Source: Neoconidiobolus thromboides FSU 785 | Taxonomy: Eukaryota > Fungi > Entomophthoromycota | Assembly: GCA_025603075.1 (NCBI GenBank) | Contig: MU626418.1 | Coordinates: forward strand, 1-45,888 | Reading direction: 5' to 3' | DNA length: 45,888 nucleotides | Shown here: one piece after another, positions 11,901-45,888 of the stretch | Layout of the letters: every line of letters begins with the position of its first letter | How positions within the stretch are numbered: position 1 is the stretch's first letter | The notes under the pieces: generated by a model | What the model was told of the DNA's origin: nothing | Database searches by the model: none | Seen by the model: the letters and a program-made list of their open reading frames with translations, nothing else | Program-made: the position numbers and the translations under genes

Positions 11901-14759
11901 TTCCCTATTGATGAAATTGCTAGTGATAAGCAAGATACAAAGGTTAAAATGGACGATTTGCCATTTTATTGCATTGGGTTTAAATCTGCTGCACCTGAAT
12001 TTACTTTACGTACTAGAATATGGGCCTCTTTAAGATCTCAAACTTTATATCGTACTATTTCTGGATTCATGAACTATTCTAAAGCCTTGAAATTATTGCA
12101 CCGAATCGAAAATCCAGAGTTAGTTCAGTTGCTAGGCGGTAATAGTGAAGCTTTAGACGAAGAGTTAGATTTAATGGCAAGGCGTAAATTTAACTTCCTG
12201 ATTTCTATGCAAAGATACACCAAGTTTAATAAGGAGGAAAAGGAAAATGTAGACTTTTTATTAAAGACTTATCCAGATCTCCAAATTGCTTATCTTGAAG
12301 AAGAAAAAGGTGTCACTGAAGATGAAGTTGTTATGTATTCTTGTTTAACTGATGGTCATATGCCAGTTAACGAAGACGGTAAAAGAGAAGCCAAATATCG
12401 TATTCGTATTCCTGGAAACCCTATTCTTGGTGATGGTAAATCGGATAATCAAAATCATGCTATTATATTCACAAGAGGTGAATATATTCAAGTCATTGAT
12501 GCTAATCAAGATAATTATCTTGAGGAAGCACTTAAAATCCGTTCCGTTTTAGCCGAGTTTGAAGAATATCAAGCTCCACAACATTCTCCATATGCTCCAG
12601 CCTCAGCCGCAGAAGAAGTAAAGAAACCAGTTGCCATTATCGGTGCCAGAGAATACATCTTCTCTGAAAATATCGGTGTACTTGGTGATATTGCTGCTGG
12701 TAAAGAACAAACCTTTGGTACTCTTACCCATCGTATCTTGTCCACTGTTGGTGGTAGATTACACTATGGTCATCCTGATTTCTTGAATATGGTCTTCATG
12801 AACACTCGTGGCGGCTTATCTAAAGCACAAAAAGGTCTTCATTTAAATGAAGATATCTATGCTGGTATGAATGCTTTCCAAAGAGGTGGAAGAATTAAGC
12901 ATTGCGAATATATTCAATGTGGTAAAGGAAGAGATCTTGGTTTTTGCTCAGTGCTTAATTTCAATACAAAGATTGGTACTGGTATGGGTGAACAGTTACT
13001 TTCTAGAGAATACTACTATCTTTACACTCAGCTTCCTTTGGATCGCTTCTTAACTCTCTTTTATGCACATCCTGGTTTTCAAGTTAACAATATGATGATT
13101 ATGTTTTCTATTCAAATCTTTTTGATGGTCTTAGCCTGTGTTGGTGTAATTACTAGTACTCAAACTGTTTGCTCTACCTCAGAAGTTAATAATGAATTCC
13201 CTGTGTTCCAAGAAAGTTTACAGTGTTGGAACAAGCTTCCAGTCACTAACTGGATCGACCGTACCGTGGTATCCGTCTTTATTGTTTTCTTCATTACTTT
13301 CCTTCCACTTATCTTACAAGTATTATCAGAGCAAGGTTTTGTTCGTATGGCAGCTAGACTTGGAAAACAATTAGCGTCCTTTTCCCCCATGTTTGAAATT
13401 TTTACTACTCAAATTTTCAGCAATTCAATTTTGAGCAACATGAGCTTTGGTGGTGCCAGATATATTGGTACTGGTCGTGGTTTTGCTACTACAAGACAAA
13501 CTTTTGCAATTCTTTACTCAAGGTTTGCTAGCTCTAGTATTTATTCTGGATTGAGAGGTTTCCTGTTTTTAATGTTCGCTTGTCTTGCCCCTCATCTTTT
13601 CTCACCTTTCTTTCTTTACTTCTGGTTTACAGTTATTGGTTTGGTCTTATCCCCTTGGATCTTTAACCCTCATCAATTGTCTTTAATGGAGTTCATTCTT
13701 GATTATCGTAACTTTTTAAGATGGATGTCTGCTGGTAACTCTTCCTCAGCAAAAGAATCATGGGTTGCTCATTGCCGTTATGCACGTACTAGAATCACTG
13801 GTCAAAAGAGAAAGAAGCTTGGTGATAAAGAAAGAAAGATTGGAGGCCATGTACCTAGAGCTCATCGTTTGATTATCTTCTTCTCAGAAGTCATTGTACC
13901 AATGATGTTTGCCATTCTGACTGTATTGATTTATGGTATCGTTTCAAACTATGATCCTGTTATTGAGGAGGACAAAAATGGTAAAAAGCCATATACTCCT
14001 CCTTCTCTTAAAGGTTCATCAGGTTTGGTACGTGCGATCTTAGTTGCTTTCCTACCTATCATCTTAAATGCTGGTATTTTGATTGTCTTGTTCCCAGTCT
14101 CCTTATTTTTGGGTCCAGTTATGACCATCTGTGCTAAATCCTTTGGTGCTGTTATTGCTGCTATTGCTCACGCTTGGGCAGTTTTAAATCTCATTATTTG
14201 CTTCGTATTATTATGGTTCTTAGAAAACTTTAACTTATCTCGTGCTATCCTTGGTATTACTGCTGCTATGTTTATTCAACGTTTCATATTTGCTTTATTA
14301 ATGTTTATGTTCTTGACACGTGAGTTTGGACATGATGGTGCTAATGTAGCTTGGTGGACTGGTAAATGGATCTCAGCAGGTTTAGGATGGATGACTATTA
14401 CTCAACCATTAAGAGAATTTGTATGTAAAATCATTGAAATGTCTTTATTTGCAACCGATTTCATCTCCGCTCATTTGATCTTTTTCTCACTTGCCCCATT
14501 CACACTTATTCCATATGTAGATAAATGGCATTCAACCATGTTGTTTTGGTTACGTCCTTCGAGACAGATACGTCCACCTATCTTTTCATTAAGGCAAATG
14601 AATCAACGCCGCCGTCGTGCCATTCTTTATGGAATCTTGTTTGTTATCATATTTGCTTTCTTTGTAGGCCTTATTGTAGCTCCTCTTTTATTTAAGAAGA
14701 CAATCTTAGGAATCTTTTCAAGGAAAAGCATATCTATTCTTTCTTCCTTTTATGTTTAA
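8994..14759 (+). CDS. FKS1: 1,3-beta-glucan synthase catalytic subunit (GT48), 1921 aa, single exon
   Basis: Hallmark motifs [105 protein letters not shown]; many transmembrane segments. Confidence 0.98.
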   Translation: [1921 protein letters not shown]

Positions 14760-27768: not shown

Positions 27769-30700
27769 ATGTTAGATTCAGAGTCAGAATCAGATGTTCA
27801 AGAAATAAGACATAATAGAAGAAGACGTGCAGTAATAGATGATGAAAGCCCGGATGAAGAAGAGGAAGATGAAGAAGATGAAGAAGGTCTGGATGAGTTT
27901 GAAAAGGATGACTTTTTAGTAGATGAAGAAGAAGAAGAGGAGGAAGAAGAGACTATTAAAGTTAAAAAACCAAAGAAAAAGAAGAAAATATCGAATAGTA
28001 ATTTATTGTAACTACTCGTGGTTTAAACTAAAACAATATTAGGTGAGGACGAACTTGATGAAGCGGATCTTGATTTGATTAAAGAGAATACTGGTTTGAA
28101 CTTGGGCTCAAATAAAGTAAGTTTCTTCAATAATAAATATTTAGATTGATTTCTTAATAATCAAAGTTAACCCGTCTTCAAAGAAAGAGAGATGATGATT
28201 ACTCTGATGAACAAGAAGATTACGATCAAAATTATAATAAGGATCATTTAAACAATATGTTTGCAGATGAAGAAGAAGGAATTGTGCAAGACGAGGAATA
28301 TGATGATTATTTAGATGATTTTATTGAGCATGATCTTGGAGATGATGAAGAAGATATGCAAGATGAAGATCCTCAAGTAATGATGGAACGCAGAGAAAAA
28401 ATAAGGCAACAAAAATCCGAACACCTCCGTAAGTTACGAGCATCTGGCGTTGATGTTGAGTAAGTTCATTTATTTTATATTTAATTTTATGCTAATCTCA
28501 TTTAGAGTTCAAGACATTATCATTGAAATTTTTGGTGATGGAACTGATTATAACTATGCTATGTTTGATCCAGACGTCGTCAGAGAATCGAATAAAGAAG
28601 CTCCACAGACTGCGCTTCAAGCAGCTTTTGAACCTGCTGAACTTGCTGAAAGAATGATGACAGAGCAAGATGAAATTATTCGGAATATGGATATGCCTGA
28701 GAGGATGCAAGGGAGGTTCGCTGATTTGATGGATAATAGGCCCGATGATTCAGAAATTGAAGCAGAAGCTACTTGGATATGTAACAAGATGGTTGATTTA
28801 TTGCAATCAGAATTCTTTTCAGAAGTAGCAACTAGTACAGCACCATCAATAGTAAAGGACTCAGTAACGGCATGCCTTGCTTTTTTCAATAAAGATTTCC
28901 TTGAAGTTCCATTTATTTGGCATTATCGTAGAGACTATTTGATTCACCAAGATTCCAAAATTGATCACCTAAAAGACATTCTTCAGTTACCTGATATCTG
29001 GAGAATATATGATCTTGATAGCAAATATAAATTATTTCGTGGACAGCTCAAGAAATTCGAGAATAATTATTTAAATAATGAAAAAGAAAAGAGGTTTGAT
29101 GACTACGTTGAAAGATACGCTCGAAGTGTTGAAAAAATTGAGGAAGTACAGGATATGATTGATTATATTAGTGTTAACTTTAGCTCCAAATCGAAAGGCC
29201 CTCGAGTGAATAACTCAAATGCAAATTTTTTTGAAAATTGTAAGCTAGCAGGGCTTGATGATTTGGTTTTGGAGTTCGGAATTTCACCACAAAACTTTGG
29301 GATCAATGTAATAGAAGGCCTAAATGTATATATTTCTCAAGATCCTCCGATAGCACCGCTTGAACTGTGTAAAAAATATGTATCAAAATATTTACCTACC
29401 CCCGAGCTTGTGCTTAAAAACATAAAAACATATATTTCGCAGCTCATGTATTACGATTTGAGATTGAGAAAATCAGTACGACAAGCATTTGAGCTTAGTT
29501 CCGTTATATCTGTGCAACCTACCCCAAGAGGTGTTTTGGAAATAGATACAAATAGTAGATTCTTCTCATTTAAGTTTGTTGATAAAAAGCCAATTTATAA
29601 TATGGGATATAAATTTCTTTTAATGCTAGAAGCAGAGGAACTAGGGTTAATTAAATTGGATGTAACTCTACCTAGAAAAGGGGATTTCATTTCAAATATA
29701 TTACTGTTTTACTATGGTGATCAATCTAACCCCAATTCCAAACTTTGGAATAAGACTCGTTCTGATATAATTGAATTGCTTTTTTATGAAAATTTCTTCC
29801 CTGTGTTAGAAGTTTGGATAAAGGAGAAGCTTAGACTACAAGCACAAGAGTATTTAGCCATCGAAGTCCAAAATGCAATCGAAAGAAAAATAAGTATGGC
29901 ACCTTATAAATCTCATAACATGAGAAGCGGTATCCCTCCTCGCGTGATTGCTATGAGTAACGGTACTGGACAAATGAGAGACCCATCAGTTGCAGTATAT
30001 TTAAATGAGAAGGGCATTGTTGAAGAAGTACTTGAGTTTGGCGACTTGAGGGATGAAGCCAATAAGACCATATTAGCTTCCTTTTTCGAATCACATCCAG
30101 CTGACGTGATCGTTGGATCTGGTTTTGATTTAGCAGCAAGAAGCTTTATGGAAAGAGTTCGAACGGTTTTTTCCGAATCCAGAGCAATCTATGATAGTCC
30201 ATGTGAAATCATATTACATACTGACGAAGCTGCAAGAATATACTTCCTTTTAGATAAAGCACATGAGGAATTTCCAAAATACCATCAAGTCGCGCTATAT
30301 TGTATATCTTTGGCTAGACATCTACAAGATCCACTTATTGAGTTTGCTGCCTTAGGTGAAAACATTTCAAACATCACATTTCATCAATATCAACATCTTT
30401 TGCCCAAAGAAATGCTTGACACAGCTATTGAAAGAGCTTTTGCGAACGTGGTTAGTACTGTTGGTATTCGTATATATATGCTTCCTTCGAATAAAAGATT
30501 AGGAAATTTAGTAAAATATATCCCAGGTCTTGGCCCAAGAAAAGCTCAACTTCTTATAAAAAGAACAGAGGAAGTCGATAGATACGAATCTCGAGCTGAA
30601 TTAGTCACGAGAAAAGGTGTTACAAGAAATGTTTTTGTTAACTGTGCGCCATTTATTCAGCTTTTGAATCCAACTGAGGTTTTAGATGCTACTCGTATGC

Positions 30701-32367
30701 ATCCTGAAGATTATAGTTTAGCAAGAAAAATGGCTGCTGATGCCCTTGAAGTAGATGAAGATGAGATGGATGATAGCAGCCATCCCTCTGCAAATGTTAC
30801 TGAAATTATAGAAAGACAAAGCCATCGCCTTAATGATTTAGATTTATCTGATTATTCTATGATTTTAAGTAAGAAATATGAAGCCCCCAAAACTGCAGTT
30901 TTGACAATGGTTAAGAGGGAATTCTGTAACCCATTTGGTGAAAATCGTTTGCCATTTAAACCTGCAAGCTTTGAAGAGCTTTTTGCGCAACTTACAGGTG
31001 AAACTGTCGAAACACTTAGTTCACATATGACTGTCCCTATTGAAATAACAAAAGTCCTCCCAAGAGTAGTACTTTGCAAATTAAGCTCAGGTTTAGATGG
31101 CGTTATACCATTTCGAAGAATCATTAAAAAAGATGAGCTTCAGCAAGGGTCTATTGTCCAAGCAGCAATTATTTCTGTCAATTTGGAACGATTCCAGGTT
31201 GAACTTTCGTTGCTTGAAGAAGATATACGCGAGTGTCAAAGAAAAGCCAAACTTTATTATAGTAAAGATGGTCCAGGTGTAGATAAATATTTTGCGCAGC
31301 AATTATTTGAGAAAGAACTTACAGATCACCCAGAAATATACCCAAATATGCCTAAACAAATTCGTACTACTAGAACAAGGAATCCCAATGTGGGCGCGAT
31401 TATGAATCCATTTTATAAAGATCTTACTTTCCATGAAGCTGAAGAATATCTTGCAAACAAGAACATTGGCGAATACTTGCTTCGTCCATCATCTCATGGT
31501 GCAAATCATATTTCACTTACATGGAAGTTCTATACCAATGTTTATTATCACTTAAACATAAAGGAAGAAAGCCACCCTGATTTCCCAAATGCTCCACCAC
31601 GCCTTAAAATAGCAAATTACACTTACACGGATTTAGATGAACTTGTAGTCAGTTTTATTGATGCTAGTAGACATAAAGTAGATGAATTAATTAAGCATCC
31701 AAAATTCCATAAAGGTACTCAGAGTAGCTTAGAGGAATATATCACCACCACTTCACTTGCACAACCTAAACAGTCTATTTATGGACTCTGTGTTGATGAT
31801 AAAAGCCCTGGATATTTCAGTTTAGGGTTCAAATTAAATGGAAAATCAAGGTTTATGATATGGCCTATCAAAGTGGAACCTAAGGCATACATTTTAAATA
31901 AAGTATCGTACCCAGATACAAGCGCATTGATGAATGGCTTTAAACTCATGGCAGCCAACCTTGCTGCACAGGCACAAGCGCCTTCTCAAGGCCATCAACA
32001 TATACAAGGGTTTAGACCAATGGCGCGCCCACCAAGACCTTTACCAGTACCACCAAATATGCATGGCCAACCACATCCAATGCATCCAGGTATGCAGGTG
32101 CCAAGGCATCCACGACCAGTAATGCATATGCAAGGACATCGACCACCTCAATTCCCACATCACCAAATGCATATGGGAAGGCCTATCCCACCACCCTTTG
32201 CATCTCAATATCCTGGGGCATTACATCAACATGGTCAACCACAAATGATGATCCCAGGACGCCCTAATAATATTTATCCAGGGCATACAAGTTCATCATT
32301 ACAACCCCAACAAGATCCTAATTACAACCCCCAAAATAACAATTATCATGGCCAACCATATCAGTAA
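27769..32367 (+). CDS. SPT6: Transcription elongation factor / histone chaperone Spt6, 3 introns near the 5' end
   Basis: Acidic N-terminus, AAFEPAELAERMMTEQDEIIRNMDMPERMQ, EVPFIWHYRRDY, YqgF/HhH region (ARHLQDPLIEFA, PGLGPRKA, LDATRMHPEDYSLARKMAADAL), S1 region, tandem SH2 (YLLRPSSHGANHISLTWK), P/Q/H/M-rich tail. ORFs 27769, 28257 and 28450 join via GT-AG introns. Confidence 0.95.
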
Positions 32368-32634
32368 GGTATCGATCTCACTATTTTGATCTATTATAAC
32401 TTTTATATTTCCTTTGGTATTACCTTTTATAGGCTTTTTTAACTAACAAGAAATAATCTCAAAAATAAAATAAAAGTAAAGCATATTATGCAACTTGATA
32501 TTTTATATTTCATCTGATCAAATTTTTCTAACAAGTAATAATAGTAAAGTCTGCTATTGAAACTAAATAAACATTAAAAATGTTAGTAAATTTTTTAAAC
32601 TTTTTTCTATAATAGTGGTGAGTGGATTATATAT

Positions 32635-32733
32635 GGGAATGTATTTTTGTATTCAAGAATTTTACTAACAATTTTTCCACTCAAATAGTGCTTAAAAGAT
32701 GGAAAAAATGCTGAAGCTAAAAAAAACATCCCC
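32635..32733 (-). mobile_element. MITE family copy 3
   Basis: Reverse orientation, 99 bp, ATAT/ATAT flanks. Confidence 0.92.
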
Positions 32734-32890
32734 ATATAGTTATTTTTAATTTGACAAGATTTAATTATCAACTATTAATTTTGATGAATAACTTGAAATT
32801 CAAAATTATTTTATTCTTTAAAGTAGAAGAATAGTTACATATAACTGATCTTTTTCATCAGCACTAAATTATCTCAAATAGAAAAGATAA

Positions 32891-34151: not shown

Positions 34152-35276
34152 CCTGCTAGTTATTAAAATTGGTATTATAGGATCAAAGTTAAACGTGAAA
34201 TATTAGAAAGCTATTTGATTAATAGTAGTATAAATTCAAAGCTAGCCTGATAGCTTAAGTTGTTATGTAAACCTTGTTCACGACTGTGATCTTTAACTGT
34301 TTCATTTTCTCTCGAATTGAGCTTTGATATCATTAATACCCTTTTGATTGGATTATTCTTGCTATTTGTGCACTTTAATTTGCTAAAATTGGAAGTTTAA
34401 CAAATAATATAAAGCCAAAATTTAACTTTGTATGTTTATTTTGCGTCATTTAATTTTATTGTTATTTTTTAACTATTTATTAAGAACAATGTAAAATTTA
34501 ATGTTATTATATATTTTAAGGCATTATAGTCAATTACCAAATTAAATTAAAAACCTAATAAAGATATTTATTTTTTCTTATCAATTGTTATCCTTGAATA
34601 AGCTAAAGTTAGGCTTTTTTAATAAATATTTTTGTCATTTAATAACATTTAACTCTTACTAGTTTGTTAAAATCGTTCAATAAAACATACTATGTAAAAG
34701 CTTTGAAAAGTTTTAACATCTTAAATTACTTGTTGGATGGTAAAGCTTATACAGTTTACTATTTGCGGAATGTCTTTTATCTAATAAATTAATTAACAAT
34801 TGTTTTGAACTTGAAATTACTTTAAAGATAATAAAATACCGATACAAAAAATTATACTCTATATTCTAAATAAATATATATCATACATATAACATGTTTG
34901 CACTATATAGTTATTAAGTTTACTCAAGTATTAGATTTTAAGGTAAGCAATTGATGAACTTTATTGTAATTTAAAGTAGTTACTATCTATTAAATTTATA
35001 CTTTTTCAAATTTATAAAAGGGGGTTTATTAAAGTCAATATTTTTGTATCAAACTGACATTGTCAAAGTGGTATTAAAATTAATGTATTATCTATACGTT
35101 CCTATTATTTGGACACATTCAAAGACAAAGTGCTGTTAGAATTTTAAATTCTATGATTTAAATTAGACAACCACACATTATCGTATTTTCCTAAGGCTTT
35201 AGCTAACTATTATTGCTGTAAAACGAAGGTAATAATATCTTTGAATTACAAAATTACCTAAATTTATAGTTAATAT

Positions 35277-35375
35277 GGGGATGTATTTTTGTGTCTAACA
35301 ATTTTACTAACGATTTTTCCACTTAAATAGCGCTTGGAAGGTGGAAAAAGTAATCAAGCCAAAAAAAACATCCCC
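35277..35375 (-). mobile_element. MITE family copy 5
   Basis: Reverse orientation, 99 bp, ATAT/ATAT flanks. Confidence 0.92.
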
Positions 35376-35839
35376 ATATATTTTTTGGGAATTTAGGTGA
35401 TCTAAAGCATAAGTGTTTTATTTATCAGACAAATAACGAATTATAGCAGTAGTTTATCTCTGAAAAGTATTTAGCTAAAAGTTTTGAAGGAACCTAAGAT
35501 GTAGATTTTGTAAACAATCTGCTTTACATATATTGATATTAGTGCACTTGAACGTTGACCTCTTATTTTTCAAAACCTTCTAATTAAATAGATGATGCAA
35601 TTTTTTTAGGAAACAGATGAGAAAAAGGAAATTGCCATTTTTGTTGTATTGGATTGATGGTGTCAATTTTTTCAAGCTACTTATCTATACGAAAAGGTTG
35701 GTTTATTCAAGGAAGAAAAAAATTAATATAAAGATATAGAAAATAAGAAGTGAGAACTTTAGTTCAAATTTCGATCCTATATTAAAAAATTAACCAAATT
35801 CTAAACAAATCAATTTATGTTATATATGAATAAACATAT

Positions 35840-35933: not shown

Positions 35934-36249
35934 ATATTCTGATATATTAGATTAGTTCGATGTTAAACGAACTTTACAATGTTTTCTATAATTATCAATT
36001 GCGATTTTAGTTTTGTTACTTATACATCCGGGTTTTTCATTTACACAATATAAGCAGTATAATTCCATGCTAGTATATCAAGATGAGTAGCATGAAATTG
36101 GATGTGGATATATATAAGTAACCAATTTAATGTATAAAAAGCAATAAAATCATGTTGTCAATTATTTTTCAGTCAACTGTAGTCTCAACTGATATTCTTA
36201 TTTATTCTGGTAAAAGGTATTAAATAAAGGTGAATTCCTTTCTTGATAT

Positions 36250-36348
36250 GGGAGTGTTTTTTTTGACTTCATTATTTCTTCCATTTTTTAAGCACTATTT
36301 AAGCGGAAAATTTGTTAGTAAAATTCTTAAATACAAAAATACATCCCC
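36250..36348 (+). mobile_element. MITE family copy 7
   Basis: 99 bp, ATAT/ATAT flanks; lies at the 5' end of the hydrolase pseudogene. Confidence 0.92.
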
Positions 36349-36524
36349 ATATTCTAAATTCTTTGGTTTCAGTAAACTACATTATCCAATAGAGGGTATA
36401 TATGTGAGGATAATTATAAAAAAGCAAAGTATCCAAAGGCCATTTTGATCGAGAGCTTGGAGCTGGAGTATCAGTAATTGATCTTTATAGTGGTTATCAA
36501 GACCTTGAGAAGAGGATAGCATAT

Positions 36525-36623
36525 GGGAGTGTTTTTTTTGGCTTCATTACTTTTTCCATCTTTTAAGCGCTATTTGAGTGGAAAAATTATTAGTAAAATT
36601 CTTAAATACAAAAATATATCCCC
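36525..36623 (+). mobile_element. MITE family copy 8 (near-consensus, inserted in a pseudogene exon)
   Basis: 99 bp, ATAT/ATAT flanks; removing the element plus one ATAT restores the frame KRIAYTSFTLNIVFSSSK. Confidence 0.95.
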
Positions 36624-37396
36624 ATATACTTCATTCACTTTGAACATAGTATTTTCATCTTCAAAATTTATGGTAGTTTTATTTTCAAAATATTGAGCTT
36701 GTTTTGATACTTAGTTTAGAGGTAAGTGCTGTTATTACTAGACTAGTAGATCAAGGACTACTTGATTATAATGAAAAGATAAGTACATATTGGCCTGAGT
36801 TTGGCAATGGTAATGAAGGAGAAGTGGCAATCGCTGATTTACTATAACATGAAGGAAGAGTATCCTTTCTAATGAATCCAAAACCAACCTATAACCTATG
36901 GGGAAGTATTACACAACTAAACTTAAAACTATTATTTCTAATACACCATATGGTATGACGGTAAAAGGGTACGATGATACCATGGTGTAACAAGAGAGTT
37001 AATTCTTAATGAAATTGTAAGAATAGTTGATAAAAAAGGGCGTAGCATTGGACAATTATTTAAAAAATAAATTAATTCGAGGTATAACATGGAATTTTAT
37101 TTAGGATTAGAAGAATCAAATAGTCATCGAAGAGCAAGATAATATAATCATCCTATCTTAGACATCTCAACTCTTTTTTTACCTGAGCGGGTGATTGGAA
37201 ATAAGGCTATTAAGTATGATAAAAGTGTCATTAAAAAGATTCAAGTTTAAATAAAACACTTCGTTCGAAAGTATCAAAAAACTGAGGTTTTGCTAATACT
37301 GCTGATCTTAAGGCCATTGAATCTTCTATTTTTAATGATCACAGTAACGCGAAATCGGTAAGATCATTGTATTTTTAAAAATTTTGATTAACTTAC

Positions 37397-37494
37397 GGGA
37401 ATGTATTTTTATGTTTAAGAATTTTACTATAAATTTTTCAGATGAAATAGCGCTTAAAAGGTACAAAAAGTGATGAAGCCAAAAAAATATCCCC
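37397..37494 (-). mobile_element. MITE family copy 9 (diverged, intronic)
   Basis: Reverse orientation, 98 bp; flanks TTAC/CTAT no longer match; sits inside predicted intron 37358-37507. Confidence 0.85.
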
Positions 37495-37927
37495 CTATTG
37501 AGTTTAGCTTGCTACTATAAATACTATCTTTGCTAATGAACGAATATCACATCATAAAAGATTTATAAGTGAGTTTGATATAAAAGGAGCAATAAGTGAA
37601 GGCATTAAAACAACCGATGTACCAATGCTTAGAGAAGCAGAGATAACTAAAGGAGGTATTAGGGTGTTTAGATGTAAAGGGATTGGAGAGTACTCAGATG
37701 TATCTTCCTATGACTAGGGTGAAATCGGTGGTGGCTGTATTCGATATTTCCCCGAATACAAGTTTTCTTTCACTCATGTCATGAATGCACAGCATACTGT
37801 CATGCCAAGTGAGGGAAGAGCTGTTGCTTCGCTTTGTACTGTTTTCAAAGAGCATTTGAAAGTATTTAATAAGGAATGAATCCAGTTTCCATTAAAATGT
37901 TGTAGGGCTGATAACAAATTTTTATAT

Positions 37928-38024
37928 GGGGATGTATTTTTATGTCCAAGAATTTTACTAACAAATTTTCTATTCAATAGTGCTTAAAAGATGGAAAAAG
38001 TAATGAAGCTAAAAAAATATCCCC
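37928..38024 (-). mobile_element. MITE family copy 10
   Basis: Reverse orientation, 97 bp, flanks ATAT/GTAT (1 mismatch). Confidence 0.9.
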
Positions 38025-38637
38025 GTATAGTGTTTAAAAATTATAATCTATGGGTTGGTATACCTAAAATTAAAATATTAAAAATTGAACATGTAAATTC
38101 TAGAACTATAGCTAAATTGTATATATAGTTTCTAAGATATCTTTTGTTGTTTTACTAAATTAATGCGCAATCATTGTAACTATCTGTCTATTAATATTAC
38201 ATACATATTGCATAGTTTAACTAATATTTAAGTGATAGTAGCTTTTAAATAAAAAGTTTCAAGGCTTAGCATAAGTAATGTACTTGATGTATCTTTATTT
38301 TCTATATTTTCATATATCATAGCTTTTGGTATTTGGATATTATAAATTTTACTTTAAATTGACTTCTACTGAAGTCAAAAACTTGAAGCCACCTTGTCAT
38401 TATAAAAGTAAAACTGATAATTGAAGATACTAAAGTACTAATAGAAACTTTCATATTGGTTTTTTTAAGGTTTATAACCAATAGATATTTAACTTAGTAA
38501 ATTTTTATTTACTATGATTTAACTAAAGACTCAACAGATTGAACCAGCAGTATAATAATTGGTATCCAACCCATCACTTTCGATGGAAAATGAAAATAGT
38601 TTAATACATAACATCATTTATAACCTCTTAAAAAAAT

Positions 38638-38880
38638 TTATTCATAATAACAACAGCAGGTTAACCATAAAAGACCACAACATTCACCTTTCTTATATCT
38701 ACCCGATGGGCCTGAACATCTCTTACAACGATCGTTACATAATCTAGCTCCTGCTGGCGCTTTACATGATCCAGCGGCACCACATTCTTGAATCTCACTA
38801 GCTATTTTACCTTCTGGAGCAGCCGCAAGGATGACGGAAAGGGAAGCAATAGCGAATAATAAAGTGGTTTGGAACTTCAT
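38638..38880 (-). CDS. Small secreted cysteine-rich peptide A, 80 aa, defensin/toxin-like (10 Cys)
   Basis: Hydrophobic signal peptide MKFQTTLLFAIASLSVILAAA; Cys spacing C-x5-C-x8-C-x3-C-x2-C-x11-CC-x6-CCC; paralog at 40409-40651 with 59/80 identical residues; upstream TATA box. Confidence 0.88.
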   Translation of the reverse strand: MKFQTTLLFAIASLSVILAAAPEGKIASEIQECGAAGSCKAPAGARLCNDRCKRCSGPSGRYKKGECCGLLWLTCCCYYE

Positions 38881-38930
38881 TCTTTTTTATAATATTACTT
38901 TTATGATTAATAGATAGTAATTTTCCTTTA

Positions 38931-38938
38931 TTTATATA
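38931..38938 (-). promoter_or_regulatory. Putative TATA box of peptide A
   Basis: TATATAAA on the minus strand 51-58 nt upstream of the ATG, at nearly the same position as in the paralog. Confidence 0.55.
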
Positions 38939-40408
38939 CTTTATCTGTATTGAGGTAATTTTTATTAACCTGTCATAATTGAATTATTAGAGCATTAAAT
39001 TATTTAATTGTTAGAATAATATTTTTTTGTTAGTATTTATTATCTACTTTATTTGAATCCTTAACCTATTAAAAATAGTCTTATTTACTGTTTAAAGGAC
39101 TTACTATCATTATCATTAATAATAGACATTAGTCCTCTACCTCTTGTTAATATGAAAGTTTTTACCCTTTTTTAGAGGACACTAGAATCAAAATCCCGAA
39201 GTTTTTTTTAGCACTTTACTAAACCTAGTAACTATCTTTCTGATTTCACTTCTTATTTGACTTTTTTAACTGTGTTATGTCACAATTCTTAGGATTGTAA
39301 TTTGAAGTTGGAACACCTATTAATCAATTTATGGAATAAGCTGTCAAACATAAATGATAAAAGTTTGTATACATATTTGCTTTGTATCATTATATAGTTA
39401 AATGTTAGTAGATCAAAGTATTTAATATGAAATTACTTTTATTTTAAGCATACGAATAAGAAAAATTAAAAATTAGTTTATATTCGACAGCTTCTACATA
39501 AATTTACCAAACAAAATACACAAATCACACTATTAAAAGTAAGCAGATATATTCTAATAAAGCTAAATCAGTAGTTATAATTATATAAATTAAACAGGCT
39601 TAAAAATGAGTAAGGTTTCATTTTAGTATTCAAAAACTTATAAATCATGGGATGGTCTTATAATTGTTACTGTATCCATTTCAAAGTGGAAGTATATTTC
39701 CTATATTCGAAATCAAAATCAAGAAACAATATCTAAATTTAAGCACTACATCATTGAGCATACATATGGAAATATTTGCTTCTCTTTTTTATAATTTTGG
39801 AATAGCCACTTAAGTCTTAAATAGTTTAATGTTATACATAGTTACCCAGTTCCTACTTTCAAATGTATTAACATTATATTATAGGTTAGTTCACATTCAA
39901 CTTATGCTATTTTCCCAGCCTTAATTTATTAAAGCTTTGTTAAATTCATAATGAATCAAAAAAATTATTCGCATCTTATTAGGCTTTCAATTTCATTTGA
40001 AGTGATTTTATATACCTTTATTAAAAGCTTTTAAAATACTTCTCTAATTAAAATCAACTACCATATAGTTTAATTCCATTATTATTTAGCATACTTTTTT
40101 TGCTAATATACTGTAATAACTAGCTTAAAAGATTCACTAGATTTTTTGTTTTTACTTATCACTTATAATTATTTTTAAATTTGAGTACTATAAGTTTTAT
40201 TTGTTTATCTTGTATTTATATCAAAATAATAGCATTTTAATAGACACAATTTGATAAATATATAACTACGACTAATAGCTTCATAAAGTTTTAATTAACA
40301 AAACTCATCCTTTTACAAATTATAGTGATAAACACACCACAATAAAATCATTTAAAGACAAAAATAGTTTCAATAAAATCATTCTTTATTAACTTAAACC
40401 CTTCAACT

Positions 40409-40651
40409 TTATTCATAATAACAACAACAAGTTAACCAGCCCCAACCACAACAATCTCCTTTTTTATAAGGTCCAGTTGGACCAGAACATTTCTTACAAC
40501 GATCATTACATAGTTTTCTGCCACCAATTCCTTTACATGAACCCGCAGCTCCACAGGCCTGGATCTCAGCAGCTATGTTGGCTTCTGGGGCAGCAGCAAT
40601 AGCAGTGGAGAGAGAAGCGATGGTAATTAATAATGTAGATTGAAATTTCAT
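40409..40651 (-). CDS. Small secreted cysteine-rich peptide B, 80 aa, defensin/toxin-like (10 Cys)
   Basis: Signal peptide MKFQSTLLITIASLSTAIAAA; same length and Cys spacing as peptide A; many synonymous differences between the pair with both frames intact. Confidence 0.88.
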   Translation of the reverse strand: MKFQSTLLITIASLSTAIAAAPEANIAAEIQACGAAGSCKGIGGRKLCNDRCKKCSGPTGPYKKGDCCGWGWLTCCCYYE

Positions 40652-40703: not shown

Positions 40704-40711
40704 TTTATATA
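40704..40711 (-). promoter_or_regulatory. Putative TATA box of peptide B
   Basis: TATATAAA on the minus strand 53-60 nt upstream of the ATG. Confidence 0.55.
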
Positions 40712-41559
40712 CCCTTATTGATTTACAGGCTTGGTTTATTATACACTATTACAAGCATGAAATGTCATTGTTTGTTATTGAATTAGTTTCAGTATCATAA
40801 AAGAAGATTGAAAAATACTGAGTATTTATTAATAAGAAAGCCTTTAACCTTTTTTGAATATATTATATCTAAAACCCGAAATTGTTGACACTTTTCTATA
40901 ATTAGTAATTATCACTTAAATTCATTTTATCAAATTTGATTTTTTAAATTTTGTTGCGTCACTTAATCCTTGGTTTCAGAATTTTAAATTAGAACACTTT
41001 TAATAATTTTGTTTTCGTAAAATATTCCATAATTCATAATTGTATTATAAATAGCAAATGTAACTATTGACTTGATCAATGTGATAAACCAAAGTTATTT
41101 AAAACAAAACTTAGTCTTTAAAAAACTAAATATATAAAAAGATAATCTAAAAATCTAATAAAAAACTATAAATAAAGATATAAATTGAGAAATTATAACA
41201 AATGATAAAATTGGATCTTAATTACTAAAAATACTCAAATTAGATTATGCCTAATTATGTATTTATTTAAATTGGAAGTGTATTATTCATAAATTTTGAT
41301 ATTTTAAAATTGAAATAAAATTATCGATTTTGAGTATTACTTCATTAAGTAAATGATTAAAAATGTTTGTTTTGAATATTAATGATTACAATTTAACAAA
41401 ATTATTATACAATGACTATATATTGTTTATCAATAATTTTTAATTTAAATATTAATTAACGTAATGCTATACTTATGAGTATTGTTTCCACCTGAAAATA
41501 GTATTTTATACTGCTGTTTGAATTTATTAGCTTTTGCGTTTGATTATTGGTCAATATTT

Positions 41560-41656
41560 GGGGATATTTTTTTGGCTTCATTACTTTTACATTTCTTAAG
41601 CACTATTTAAGTGGAAAAATTGTTAGGAAAATTCTTAAACACCAAAATATATCCCC
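41560..41656 (+). mobile_element. MITE family copy 11
   Basis: 97 bp, flanked by ATTT (41556-41559) / ATTT (41657-41660). Confidence 0.9.
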
Positions 41657-42045
41657 ATTTAATAAAGTGAAATAATTATAAAATAATCAAATAAAATAAA
41701 TCAAAGCGAAGTTTATAACAAGTTAATGATTTTATAGAATGGTTTGACCCGATTAATTATTGATACTATTGTAATAAAATGAATAATAACATATATTTCT
41801 TTAATACATAAATATAATAAAATAACTATAATTAAAGGTATTCATTTTATAAACATAATTTCTATTATAATAAAATCAACCTTATTTCATTTTTAATTGT
41901 TGTGTTACGTATCACACTTATTTAGATGATATTAAGTATTAGATGAAACAATTATTGCTTACTATAATTAGCTTATTTTCAACTAAGATTCAAAAAAACT
42001 TTTTTGATTTTCTTCTTTGTTAATATATTATAAAAAAGATTATAT

Positions 42046-42144
42046 GAGAGTGTTTTTTTTGACTTCATTATTTTTTCCATTTTTTAAGCGCTATTTAAGC
42101 GGAAAATTTTTTAGTAAAATTCTTAAACACGAAAATACATCCCT
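42046..42144 (+). mobile_element. MITE family copy 12
   Basis: 99 bp, GAGAGTG...ACATCCCT, ATAT/ATAT flanks. Confidence 0.9.
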
Positions 42145-43297
42145 ATATCTATTTAATGTGTAGCCAAATCATTAGTGGGTATTAAAGCAATAAAGTATTG
42201 GTTTTTAGCTATTATTTTTGTCAATATTATTTATTAATAAATCATATGGAGACTCTATTACTTTGAAAGTATAAAAAAAGTCAATCTATAATTTTTTTAT
42301 CAATATAATATTTAAATATCATTAAAATTGTAAAAAATAAAATCCTAAGCTGCTATATCATTCATCATTATCTTCCTTTCTGATGTTGCTACAACAATTT
42401 TAGAAGCCAAAGTAACTAATGAAACCTAATTATGTAGAGTATTTAAATCCTACATTGTGTAAAATATCGTTTTTTCAGCTCCATGATTGATTATAGCATA
42501 ATAATCACTTAAGTTGTTATATTCTCGAGTTCAGAGACAATCAATTCCATGCTCTTAGTTTGATTTGCTATGAGAATTTCTAGCTTCATCTCAAAGAATG
42601 TTATCTTCTCATTTTGATATTTGTACTTGTCAGAGCATAAAAGAGATTTTAGAGTATAGTAGCTCGAGGCTTTTTTACTGAATTACTTCCCTGATATCTC
42701 GTACATTTAATAAAGCCACTGAATTTTCTTAACAGTGTTTTACGTAGATTTTACAGTAGTATTGTCTATTCTATTTGTTTTACATAGTCTGTAGCCTATT
42801 ACGTGCTATTCTTTATGATCCAAGTCTATCTTAGTTACATAAACTAAGATCTTTCAACTTAAAGTATAGTCAACTAGGCAATAGCTCCTACTGACTCCAA
42901 TCACTGAGTACCAGATTCCACAATTGGAATTAGAAGAAGCAGTAGAATCTGTAATAAATTAGATGAAAAATGCTCAGGCCTACCTGAGAAATATAAAAAA
43001 AGAATATTACAAATTACTATAACCATCTTATTGCTTTTATTATAATTAAGCTAATTTATTAAGATGACGAATAAGTATGTTGTTTTAATAACTATTAACA
43101 TTTTTAATATTATGTATAATCACCAAAAATTAGTTTGAATGGTTTATTTTTTGTAAATATTCAAACAAATAAGCTTATATTAACGAGTATTATTGAAAAC
43201 TAACTATTGACATAATTTTACAATATTTTTGCGTATTTCAGTGTTTCTTATTTAGATTAATATTAATGCTTTGTTTAGATTTTATTTTTCAAAAAAT

Positions 43298-43397
43298 GGG
43301 AATGAATTCTTCTGCTTAAGAATTTTACTAACAGCTTCTCCATTCAAATAACGCTTAAAGAAAGGGAAAAGTGATGAAACCAAAAAAAAACATTCCC
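43298..43397 (-). mobile_element. MITE family copy 13 (diverged)
   Basis: Reverse orientation, 100 bp, flanked by AAAT (43294-43297) / AAAT (43398-43401). Confidence 0.88.
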
Positions 43398-43519
43398 AAA
43401 TACTTCTATTGAAAAGGGTCAAATAAAGATCAGTACCTAATCTTGTGTAAACCACTTCATCTCCCCCTCTTTTTACTTATTTTGAATGACTTGAGTTTAA
43501 ATAGTTGAGTAATGAACGT

Positions 43520-43950: not shown

Positions 43951-44542
43951 CTCTGACATTGTGAATAGCTGCTCTTCCTTAATTCTTTTTATCGTTAATT
44001 AATTTTACCACTTGGAAGTTCTCTCAAAAAATTAAAAAAAACATCACTATCAATTTGTAAAGATGTTACCAGCTGCTATTTTACATTCATTTGCAATCAT
44101 CTAATTGCGTTATTATTAGAGAATAAATAATTAATGTTTATTTCAAATTTTCTAAATTTTTTCTAAACCTTTCGGAATAATTTATATAATTCATTTAAAC
44201 CATCTTTCATTAATAGATAGTGTTCTCTAAAAAATATGCAATTTTCTTTCTATCTAACTTTTAACTTTAAACATACTATTCATCTCTTCATAGACCTAAT
44301 TTCAATCCTAAAAAGCTAAAGCGTTAGCAGCTTGAAATGTTTATTACTTCGATAGTTACTGTTGCTAAAAGTGTAGTAAGTGAGACAGTCAATAAAGTTA
44401 TAAATGTCAGAGCTATAGACTTGACTAAGGTAAAGACCATCTATATGGTCTATTAATAGCTAAAGAAAGTTATTCCTTAGCCTTAGTGTTAGGCTAAATA
44501 ATGTTAACTTGGATAAAATTATTGTAAGGAATAATATAATAT

Positions 44543-44639
44543 GGGAGTGTTTTTTTTGACTTCATTCTTTTTTCCATTTTCGAACACTATTTAGCGGAAA
44601 AATTGTTAGTAAAATTCTTAAACACAAAAATACATCCCC
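44543..44639 (+). mobile_element. MITE family copy 14
   Basis: 97 bp, ATAT/ATAT flanks. Confidence 0.92.
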
Positions 44640-45888
44640 ATATATTGAAGGGATTTGATAAAAGATCTGAGAATAATTTGTTGTTCAAATTAATATTTGA
44701 ACTAGTTATACTTTTAAAATAGTGGATACTTTTATACTATAACATAAGTAACTTTATCAAAACCATGATTTATTTGTAATTGCTATTAATTAGTTTTTAT
44801 ATGAGATTGATATCATCAGAAGAAGCTACCAGAGTTCTAATTAGCGCTTTTGATTGAATATTGTTATGCTTGTTTATGCAATTCTTTTTCTTTTTTATGA
44901 GATTTTATTCTTATAGTTTTGGAAATTAAAGATCTTAAAGACATACTTTTAAAGAACAACTATTAATCTAAAAATAACATAGTGAAATAACGTAGTTAAT
45001 AGTTCACAATCAACAAGTGACAAATTTGTTATTTGACATTTATTTTAAAAATCATGTTAAAAATATTAAAAGTTACCCTTCAATATAAATTACATTTTGA
45101 AAGTGAGCCTTTAAAAAACCATACTACTATATATTACTATTAAAACATTAATAAATATTATATTTTATAATAATATAATAAAAACAAATAATAAGTACCT
45201 TGGAAAGTTGAGATCAAATTAGATTGTTTTATTTTTATTTCTTATTATAATCATAACCGTTTTAGAAATAGTCATAACTCGTCTATGCTTTTAGAATAAT
45301 TTGAGTAATGCCAAACAATAATAAATTAGGTAACTCAGAGCTAAAGTGCCAAAGACAATCTAGCATGAACTTGAGCTGATTAGTTTAATAAACTTAAAAT
45401 AAAGGACTAAATAATATTTTAACAGGGTATAAAATTCAAATAAAAAGATTAAACTATGAGTGAACTATAGATTGTATGAAAAAACATTTATAAAGTTGCG
45501 CCTATCAATACATCTTAATATATCAATAAGTAAGTTACCATGATATTTATTTCATAATTATTGTATCTATTTATTCTCTATTGTTGTATTCATTATTAAC
45601 TTAGATAATCAAAAATAACATTTCAACCTATAGTTGATATTCATTTCAGATTTAATTTATAAAGTAATAAACAAAACTATATAAGATAAGCAAAAAGACA
45701 TCAACCATATACAAAAAAAATCAAATGTTTCGAGCTTTACCATTCTTACTGTTTATTACTACTACTTTAAGTGAAAATCCCCTTGGATTAACTTATTTAG
45801 ATAAGGACTGTTATAAAATCAGCGATCAAAAAATATGGTTCGAATTAGATATATCCTCAAAGTATCAACGTAATTGTCAGCCTTTACA

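Follow-up and report, generated by a model that had tools for sequence, protein, structure and literature searches.

Plectasin, copsin and other fungal defensins are antibiotic leads against Gram-positive pathogens, and extra disulfides make fungal defensins unusually stable. Plectasin and eurocin bind lipid II, and the defensins heliomicin and ARD1 are antifungal through glucosylceramide. Copsin is constitutively secreted and binds lipid II of Gram-positive bacteria, its seven paralogues include an adjacent gene pair, and the mature peptides of the copsin family, with 12 cysteines in 57-65 residues in copsin, have a conserved N-terminal Gln (PMC6461984). Here we describe two small genes, copies A and B, in a stretch of 45,888 nucleotides (hereafter the window; positions 1 to 45,888 of contig MU626418.1, assembly GCA_025603075.1) from the fungus Neoconidiobolus thromboides FSU 785. 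Sequence comparison places both in an unnamed, uncharacterised 10-cysteine subfamily spread across fungi, and structure prediction together with profile searches makes it very probable that the mature domain has the cysteine-stabilised alpha-beta (CS-alpha-beta, or cis-)defensin fold and defensin kinship. The two open reading frames (ORFs), with their coding sequences (CDS), are laid out as follows.

38638..38880, minus strand: CDS of copy A, an intronless ORF for a prepropeptide of 80 amino acids (aa), stop codon included
38824..38880, minus strand: predicted signal peptide of copy A, residues 1-19, cleavage site approximate (Kyte-Doolittle hydrophobic core after M-K)
38791..38823, minus strand: short acidic linker or propeptide of copy A, residues 20-30 (from the sequence)
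38641..38790, minus strand: predicted mature 10-cysteine defensin domain of copy A, residues 31-80 (member of alignment A4, see below; family profile E=7.7e-23)
40409..40651, minus strand: CDS of copy B, an intronless ORF for an 80-aa prepropeptide, stop codon included
40595..40651, minus strand: predicted signal peptide of copy B, residues 1-19, putatively cut at A17-I-A19 / A20 (hydrophobicity profile, -3/-1 rule)
40562..40594, minus strand: short acidic linker or propeptide of copy B, residues 20-30 (from the sequence)
40412..40561, minus strand: predicted mature 10-cysteine defensin domain of copy B, residues 31-80, the sequence modelled with AlphaFold2 (pLDDT 83.2; top fold matches are defensins)

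The two genes lie on the same strand with 1,528 bp between them, and their proteins are 74% identical without gaps. A recount on both translations gave C33, C39, C48, C52, C55, C67, C68, C75, C76 and C77, followed by YYE, as well as the APExxIAxEIQ linker, the elements C48-NDR-C52, G65-x-C67 and C75-x-C77, and 8 K/R against 3 D/E from C33 onward in each copy. At the N-terminus, M-K is followed by a 17-residue hydrophobic stretch (residues 3-19) with small residues at -3/-1 (A17 and A19 in copy B), a pattern consistent with a signal peptide that is likely cut after A19. A preliminary description of this DNA, drawn from the letters and their ORFs, had reported two intronless 80-aa ORFs about 1.5 kb apart on one strand, with this cysteine spacing, linker and charge, the three defensin-type elements and a predicted signal peptide, and all of these features were recovered here. 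The public gene models of the two genes differ from these ORFs. In P0047 (K502DRAFT_351563, copy A) the conserved C-terminus W-L-T-C-C-C-Y-Y-E is replaced by unrelated residues via an intron that lacks support in any relative and looks spurious, and P0001 (K502DRAFT_367222, copy B) has the same protein plus 12 N-terminal residues from an upstream exon, placed ahead of the signal peptide, which look like a gene-model error.

The predicted fold of the mature domain is that of a defensin. Alignment A4, comprising 25 mature-domain sequences of relatives, was used both for AlphaFold2 and as the family profile; a first model, made from the full precursor and 7 sequences, was poor (pLDDT 61.5, the predicted local distance difference test) and was discarded. 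With the mature domain and the 25 aligned relatives, the pLDDT rose to 83.2, and the model showed a helix at mature residues 14-23, containing C48 and C52 (CNDRC), and a hairpin at mature residues 34-38 / 44-48, containing C67/C68 and C75-C77. Across the 25 relatives the cysteines of C48-N-D-R-C52 are invariant, as are G65 and C67 and also C75 and C77, with C, Q or Y between the latter two. Foldseek against the PDB ranked copsin first (probability 0.97, template modelling (TM) score 0.63, 47 columns), followed by MGD-1, plectasin, mehamycin, ARD1, actinomycesin, micasin, heliomicin and scorpion toxins. With VIA-align, a search of 48,161 chains likewise gave copsin (Z 4.9, 47 residues, 2.4 A), the plectasin variant NZ2114 (Z 4.6) and eurocin (Z 4.2), then FS50 (a NaV1.5 antagonist), drosomycin and plant defensins, and its best 27 rows were all CS-alpha-beta peptides. 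Among structure clusters of the ESM Atlas, the best six belonged to Defensin_2, Gamma-thionin or scorpion-toxin-like families (TM 0.55-0.65), and the feature search of the same resource returned no score above 0.79. Since the domain has only 50 residues, the absolute scores are modest, and the fold evidence therefore rests on the uniform ranking across the three methods.

Profile searches point to the same kinship. A full-length profile of 7 sequences had no matches in the PDB, and the 25-sequence mature-domain profile A4 had seven at E<=10, all of them defensins: ARD1 (three entries, 0.035 to 0.83), heliomicin (0.17), actinomycesin, BmKDfsin3 and Defensin-1, with the cysteines aligned in canonical register. 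This link to defensins is marginal statistically but specific. Single 8-cysteine relatives used as queries matched mostly defensins and scorpion toxins, at E 1-10 only. The CS-alpha-beta core put forward in the preliminary description, which had proposed structure prediction and a Foldseek comparison as a check, is thus backed by the predicted helix plus beta-hairpin, by three fold searches in which defensins rank first, by the PDB profile search and by cysteine co-occurrence. Hydrophobins have eight cysteines arranged C-CC-C-C-CC-C in amphipathic proteins of about 70-120 aa. A hydrophobin-like or structural protein was considered and rejected, the pattern here being C-C-C-C-C-CC-CCC in a cationic 50-aa domain with no match to a Pfam hydrophobin model.

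How far do the peptides resemble the described systems? Copsin (Coprinopsis cinerea; PDB 2mn5) ranks highest by structure, the alignment taking in 47 of the 50 residues, and like copsin the N. thromboides peptides are fungal, are predicted to be made as secreted prepropeptides with disulfides beyond the canonical three on a CS-alpha-beta core, belong to a multi-copy family with an adjacent gene pair and have a Gln near the mature N-terminus, here two residues before the first cysteine. Unlike copsin they have 10 cysteines in about 50 residues, and the copsin-family cysteine pattern is not found in them; identity in the structural alignments is only 23-28%, the A4 profile does not match copsin in the PDB at E<=10, and the CC/CCC arrangement and the CGAAGSC loop are absent from copsin. 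Lipid II binding is established for copsin and would be a candidate property of the N. thromboides peptides. Plectasin, eurocin and micasin are likewise secreted by fungi and share the fold (root-mean-square deviation about 2 A over 38-39 residues for plectasin and eurocin at the Z scores given above) and the CxxxC, GxC and CxC framework, but have six cysteines, three disulfides and about 40 residues, without the CGAAGSC loop, the cysteine after the helix or the CC/CCC pair. Heliomicin and ARD1 are the best matches by sequence profile (E 0.035-0.17), with all shared cysteines in register, a very similar helix-to-strand motif and no length difference to the short 8-cysteine relatives; they differ in being lepidopteran proteins with six cysteines, and their E-values are marginal. 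The macins (hydramacin, neuromacin, theromacin) offer a further comparison: leech macins have the helix motif CNDRCK, G-x-C, a C-terminal C-x-C-Y and 8-10 cysteines (PMC12295236), and in the literature searched CNDRCK, identical to the motif in the N. thromboides peptides, occurred only there. However, macins have another N-terminus and a long extra cysteine-bearing segment between GxC and CxC, and no macin structure was matched by the family profile at E<=10 or stood among the listed fold-search matches.

The uncharacterised 8-cysteine relatives are clear homologues with profile E-values of 1e-5 to 1e-25, which share the N-terminal loop, the CN[DN]RC helix, the cysteine after the helix and G-x-C-G...W-Q-T-C-x-C, but do not have C68 and C76 (CGG...CQC or CYC); some have a post-helix loop shorter by five residues. 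In alignment A4, all 14 ten-cysteine sequences have both C68 and C76 (CC...CCC), whereas neither is present in any of the other 11, of which ten have 8 cysteines and one has 7 (CG...C[QY]C), with zero mixed cases. This co-presence or co-absence argues for a C68-C76 bond gained as a pair, and the tree, in which the 10-cysteine clade is nested inside 8-cysteine forms, also argues for an origin of the 10-cysteine subfamily from 8-cysteine relatives. C33 and C55 are present in nearly all 8- and 10-cysteine members, and the PDB alignment register fits C48-C75, C52-C77 and C39-C67; because these canonical bonds, together with C68-C76, leave only C33 and C55, the latter two would have to pair. The map deduced from sequence would hence comprise C39-C67, C48-C75 and C52-C77 as canonical bonds and C33-C55 and C68-C76 as extra ones, with C68 and C76 expected on adjacent strands of the hairpin, pointing away from the helix. 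This agrees with the two extra disulfides from C33, C55, C68 and C76 suggested earlier, the bonds themselves being deduced in both cases.

The distribution of the relatives contradicts the proposal of a lineage-specific family, and an orphan family confined to one lineage is ruled out by relatives in four fungal phyla and in rotifers. A word-based search matched only the N. thromboides proteins themselves, one Monosporascus protein and one metagenomic fragment, and of 1.84 billion representatives searched with a profile only 30 matched at E<=0.001; a second profile search, against a larger clustered collection, added further relatives. Members with CC...CCC occur in Monosporascus (Ascomycota), Collybia nuda (Basidiomycota), two Umbelopsis species (Mucoromycota) and several environmental assemblies, so that the 10-cysteine form, including N. 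thromboides, is found in Zoopagomycota, Mucoromycota, Ascomycota and Basidiomycota. Their mature domains are 66-80% identical to that of copy B across phyla (alignment A4). The CC half is also seen in a Thelonectria protein whose public model ends before the C-terminal cysteines. The 8-cysteine relatives (CGG...C[QY]C instead of CCG...CCC) come from Purpureocillium, Ascodesmis, Cutaneotrichosporon and the bdelloid rotifers Rotaria and Adineta, and a truncated Clonostachys model carries the CGG half. In UniRef the Ascodesmis and Cutaneotrichosporon proteins (P0025, P0031) are named 'Invertebrate defensins family profile domain-containing protein', and all 10-cysteine proteins are labelled 'hypothetical', none of them bearing a name from the invertebrate-defensin profile (PROSITE PS51378). 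With no matching Pfam model either, the earlier failure to recognise a named family stands, and the exact family motifs were not found as peptide sequence in the literature searched.

Two groups of relatives call for separate mention. The bdelloid members (P0019, P0026, P0032, P0039-P0041, P0051 and P0052 from Rotaria and Adineta), all with 8 cysteines, form one clade in the tree (support 86/78). Bdelloid rotifers are known to acquire foreign genes, and the clade fits such uptake, though contamination or transfer in the other direction might also account for it. The homologue of Monosporascus sp. mg162 (L008:3001-3388) has two introns inside the mature domain, one of 53 nt (phase 0) directly following L-C-N-D-R and one of 68 nt (phase 2) following G-W-Q, whereas the N. 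thromboides genes are intronless. About a dozen public models of relatives are cut short, either reading into the first intron ('CNDRV...') or ending at the second.

Within N. thromboides, copies A and B are old paralogues under strong purifying selection. Their DNA likeness is limited to the stretch from a few bases before the ATG to the stop codon, with flanks that cannot be aligned, and counting after Nei-Gojobori gave a nonsynonymous rate (dN) of 0.19, a saturated synonymous rate (dS) of about 2 and a dN/dS of 0.09, which is similar in the signal/linker part and in the mature part. It is this combination that argues for the age of the copies and for the retention of both. The whole assembly (24.6 Mb, 799 contigs), searched in six frames, contains six intact copies and one pseudogene: besides the two in the window, one copy lies on contig C346, a head-to-head pair on C349 and one copy on C410. 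All ten cysteines are kept across the paralogues and across phyla. The N. thromboides copies group as a single clade in the maximum-likelihood tree (support 87/86), and the six-copy expansion is therefore specific to this species. The C346 paralogue (G000:C346:1816-2055; L002:1501-1740, minus strand) is 90% identical to copy B. On C349 the two genes (G000:C349:10794-11033, L003:1498-1737, minus strand; and 12737-12976, L004:1501-1740, plus strand) have identical coding sequences, and beyond the CDS their likeness extends for only about 10 nt, a pattern suggestive of gene conversion or of a CDS-confined duplication. The pseudogene (G000:C212, about 31983-32135; L007:1411-1770, minus strand) has in-frame stops, no signal peptide and several Cys-to-Tyr changes, which would be G-to-A transitions.

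In many homologues the propeptide is longer and its terminal R or KR stands one residue ahead of the first cysteine, as is typical of fungal defensin precursors. In place of this, the N. thromboides copies have the short acidic linker ending in E-I-Q, with Gln two residues before C33 in 6/6 copies; by analogy with the conserved N-terminal Gln of the copsin family (PMC6461984), a pyroglutamate N-terminus at Q31 is possible. Upstream of the ATG a TATA-like box was found at about 55-65 nt in all paralogues, in the window at the following putative sites from a motif scan.

38932..38938, minus strand: TATA-like box, 58 nt upstream of the ATG of copy A
40705..40711, minus strand: TATA-like box, 60 nt upstream of the ATG of copy B

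Two public sequencing runs, X1 and X2, bear on expression; that they are RNA is a guess and not on record, and their contig depth cannot rank expression. In both, contigs cover the two CDS regions only, with no intergenic DNA and with k-mer depths in the thousands. Of the listed differences of these contigs from copy B, 11/11 are bases of the C346 paralogue, and the X2 contig has an end that does not align and that reads as the C346 5' flank in reverse complement, so the runs contain a C346-type gene of the same species as an abundant, probably RNA-derived molecule. The X2 contig is colinear with the C346 5' flank to about -138 and thus passes through the TATA-like box. The pieces that fall on copy A agree with it at 94-95% identity and correspond to no assembled paralogue.

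Taken together, we put the probability at roughly 0.65 that copies A and B encode a secreted, very stable, cationic antimicrobial defensin with five disulfides and are old paralogues within an ancient pan-fungal 10-cysteine subfamily. The prepropeptide would consist of a signal peptide of about 19 residues, an acidic linker of 11-12 residues and a cationic mature domain of about 49-50 residues, in which C39-C67, C48-C75 and C52-C77 would staple the helix (CNDRC) to the C-terminal strand, C33-C55 would tie the N-terminal loop to the helix end and C68-C76 would cross the outer face of the hairpin. Once secreted, the peptide would be used against competing microbes, an antimicrobial role that the analogy with known defensins makes probable, by binding a conserved envelope lipid. 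As the nearest structures are copsin, plectasin and eurocin and the nearest sequences ARD1 and heliomicin, bacterial lipid II, the target of the former three, ranks first as a candidate, if only tentatively, and fungal glucosylceramide, the target of the latter two, ranks second. Several results weigh against this explanation. Foldseek E-values were above 0.09 and VIA-align Z scores below 5, as expected for 50 residues; the best PDB profile E-value was 0.035, with no significant match to a characterised defensin; neither protein matched any Pfam family at E<=10, nine relatives matched no defensin family at the same threshold, and PF01097 (Defensin_2), run in six frames over the whole genome, had no match, so that the family is not to be filed under that Pfam entry. 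By sequence the top matches are antifungal defensins, by structure antibacterial ones. Evidence for expression of the window copies is thin, since copy B is represented in the two runs by one 115-nt piece (99% identical) and the remaining contigs belong to paralogues or other alleles.

The disagreement between sequence and structure bears directly on the possibility that the same fold serves against competing fungi by binding membrane sphingolipids such as glucosylceramide. ARD1 and heliomicin, as best PDB profile matches, share C-N-x-x-C-K...G-Y-K-x-G-x-C-G...C-x-C with the short 8-cysteine relatives at equal length, and VIA-align also lists drosomycin and plant defensins, but the top structural matches are the lipid II-binding copsin, plectasin and eurocin, a fungal producer would need self-protection, and the E-values are marginal either way; we regard a primarily antifungal peptide as unlikely. 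N. thromboides infects insects, so a toxin or immune effector that blocks insect ion channels or disturbs aphid immunity during infection also deserves consideration, the more so as CS-alpha-beta scorpion toxins and channel-blocking peptides stand lower in the fold lists. A fungal defensin blocking a potassium channel is reported (PMC13199095). However, members of the subfamily with mature domains 66-78% identical come from sources not known to be insect pathogens (Umbelopsis, Collybia nuda, Monosporascus, environmental samples), and the strong purifying selection differs from what typical host-interaction effectors show, which makes an insect-directed function improbable. The insecticidal role raised in the preliminary description accordingly found no support, most carriers not being known as insect pathogens and selection being purifying instead of diversifying.

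A role outside defence, as a signalling or recognition peptide (like plant SCR/LURE) or a cell-wall-associated structural peptide, has a precedent in plants, where defensin-like folds were recruited for signalling (PMC3525529). In contrast to signalling peptides, which are usually fast-diverging and confined to one lineage, this domain hardly varies between phyla, and the small, cationic, repeat-free peptide does not have the hydrophobin cysteine pattern; such a role therefore seems more remote still. That the two ORFs are chance frames or dead relics would be in keeping with a gene-poor region full of MITE-like repeats and with the dead family copy elsewhere in the genome, but both frames are intact, dN/dS is 0.09 at saturated dS, and the ten cysteines are conserved across paralogues and phyla; the conservation data reject chance ORFs, and the probability of relics is negligible. 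A bolder form of the antimicrobial defensin explanation starts from the N-terminal loop C-G-A-A/E-G-S-C-x-G-x-G-G, which is Gly/Ala-rich and almost invariant. This loop might form a backbone-amide cage for an anionic ligand, e.g. the lipid II pyrophosphate, as a module unlike those of plectasin and copsin, in which case the subfamily would represent an ancient five-disulfide class of defensin antibiotics in its own right, pan-fungal in range, and the family would have passed horizontally to bdelloid rotifers; we consider this extended version rather doubtful.

The surroundings of the gene pair are repeat-rich, as the preliminary description had held. The window has a G+C content of about 28%, and an element of about 120 nt resembling a miniature inverted-repeat transposable element (MITE) occurs in at least 12 copies, in both orientations, in the last 13.5 kb (32.4-45.9 kb). 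In 34.0-45.9 kb the longest other ORF has 72 aa, which is compatible with, but does not prove, the claim that no other intact genes lie in the last ~11.7 kb. Just upstream of this gene-poor block lies a single ORF of 1,305 aa which, judged by eye, we take to resemble the transcription elongation factor Spt6. Examples of the MITE-like copies and the neighbouring ORF are given by their window positions.

28450-32367, plus strand: 1,305-aa single ORF, presumably Spt6-like
32628-32752: MITE-like copy
35273-35394: MITE-like copy
36246-36361: MITE-like copy
36521-36636: MITE-like copy
37389-37514: MITE-like copy
37920-38036: MITE-like copy, flanking the gene pair
41554-41669: MITE-like copy, flanking the gene pair on the other side
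42031-42160: MITE-like copy
43288-43415: MITE-like copy
44537-44652: MITE-like copy

For the genome of N. thromboides itself the outcome is the more ordinary one of a six-copy defensin family in repeat-rich DNA. The defensin kind as such is already known, and what is new is the 10-cysteine CC/CCC arrangement, for which there is neither a Pfam model nor a name. Follow-up work can build on a disulfide map open to testing, on a curated alignment in which many truncated public gene models are set right, and on a short list of natural variants, with 10 against 8 cysteines, for structure-activity studies. An identity of 66-78% in the mature domain across four phyla is rare for defence peptides, and such conservation points to a strongly conserved target.

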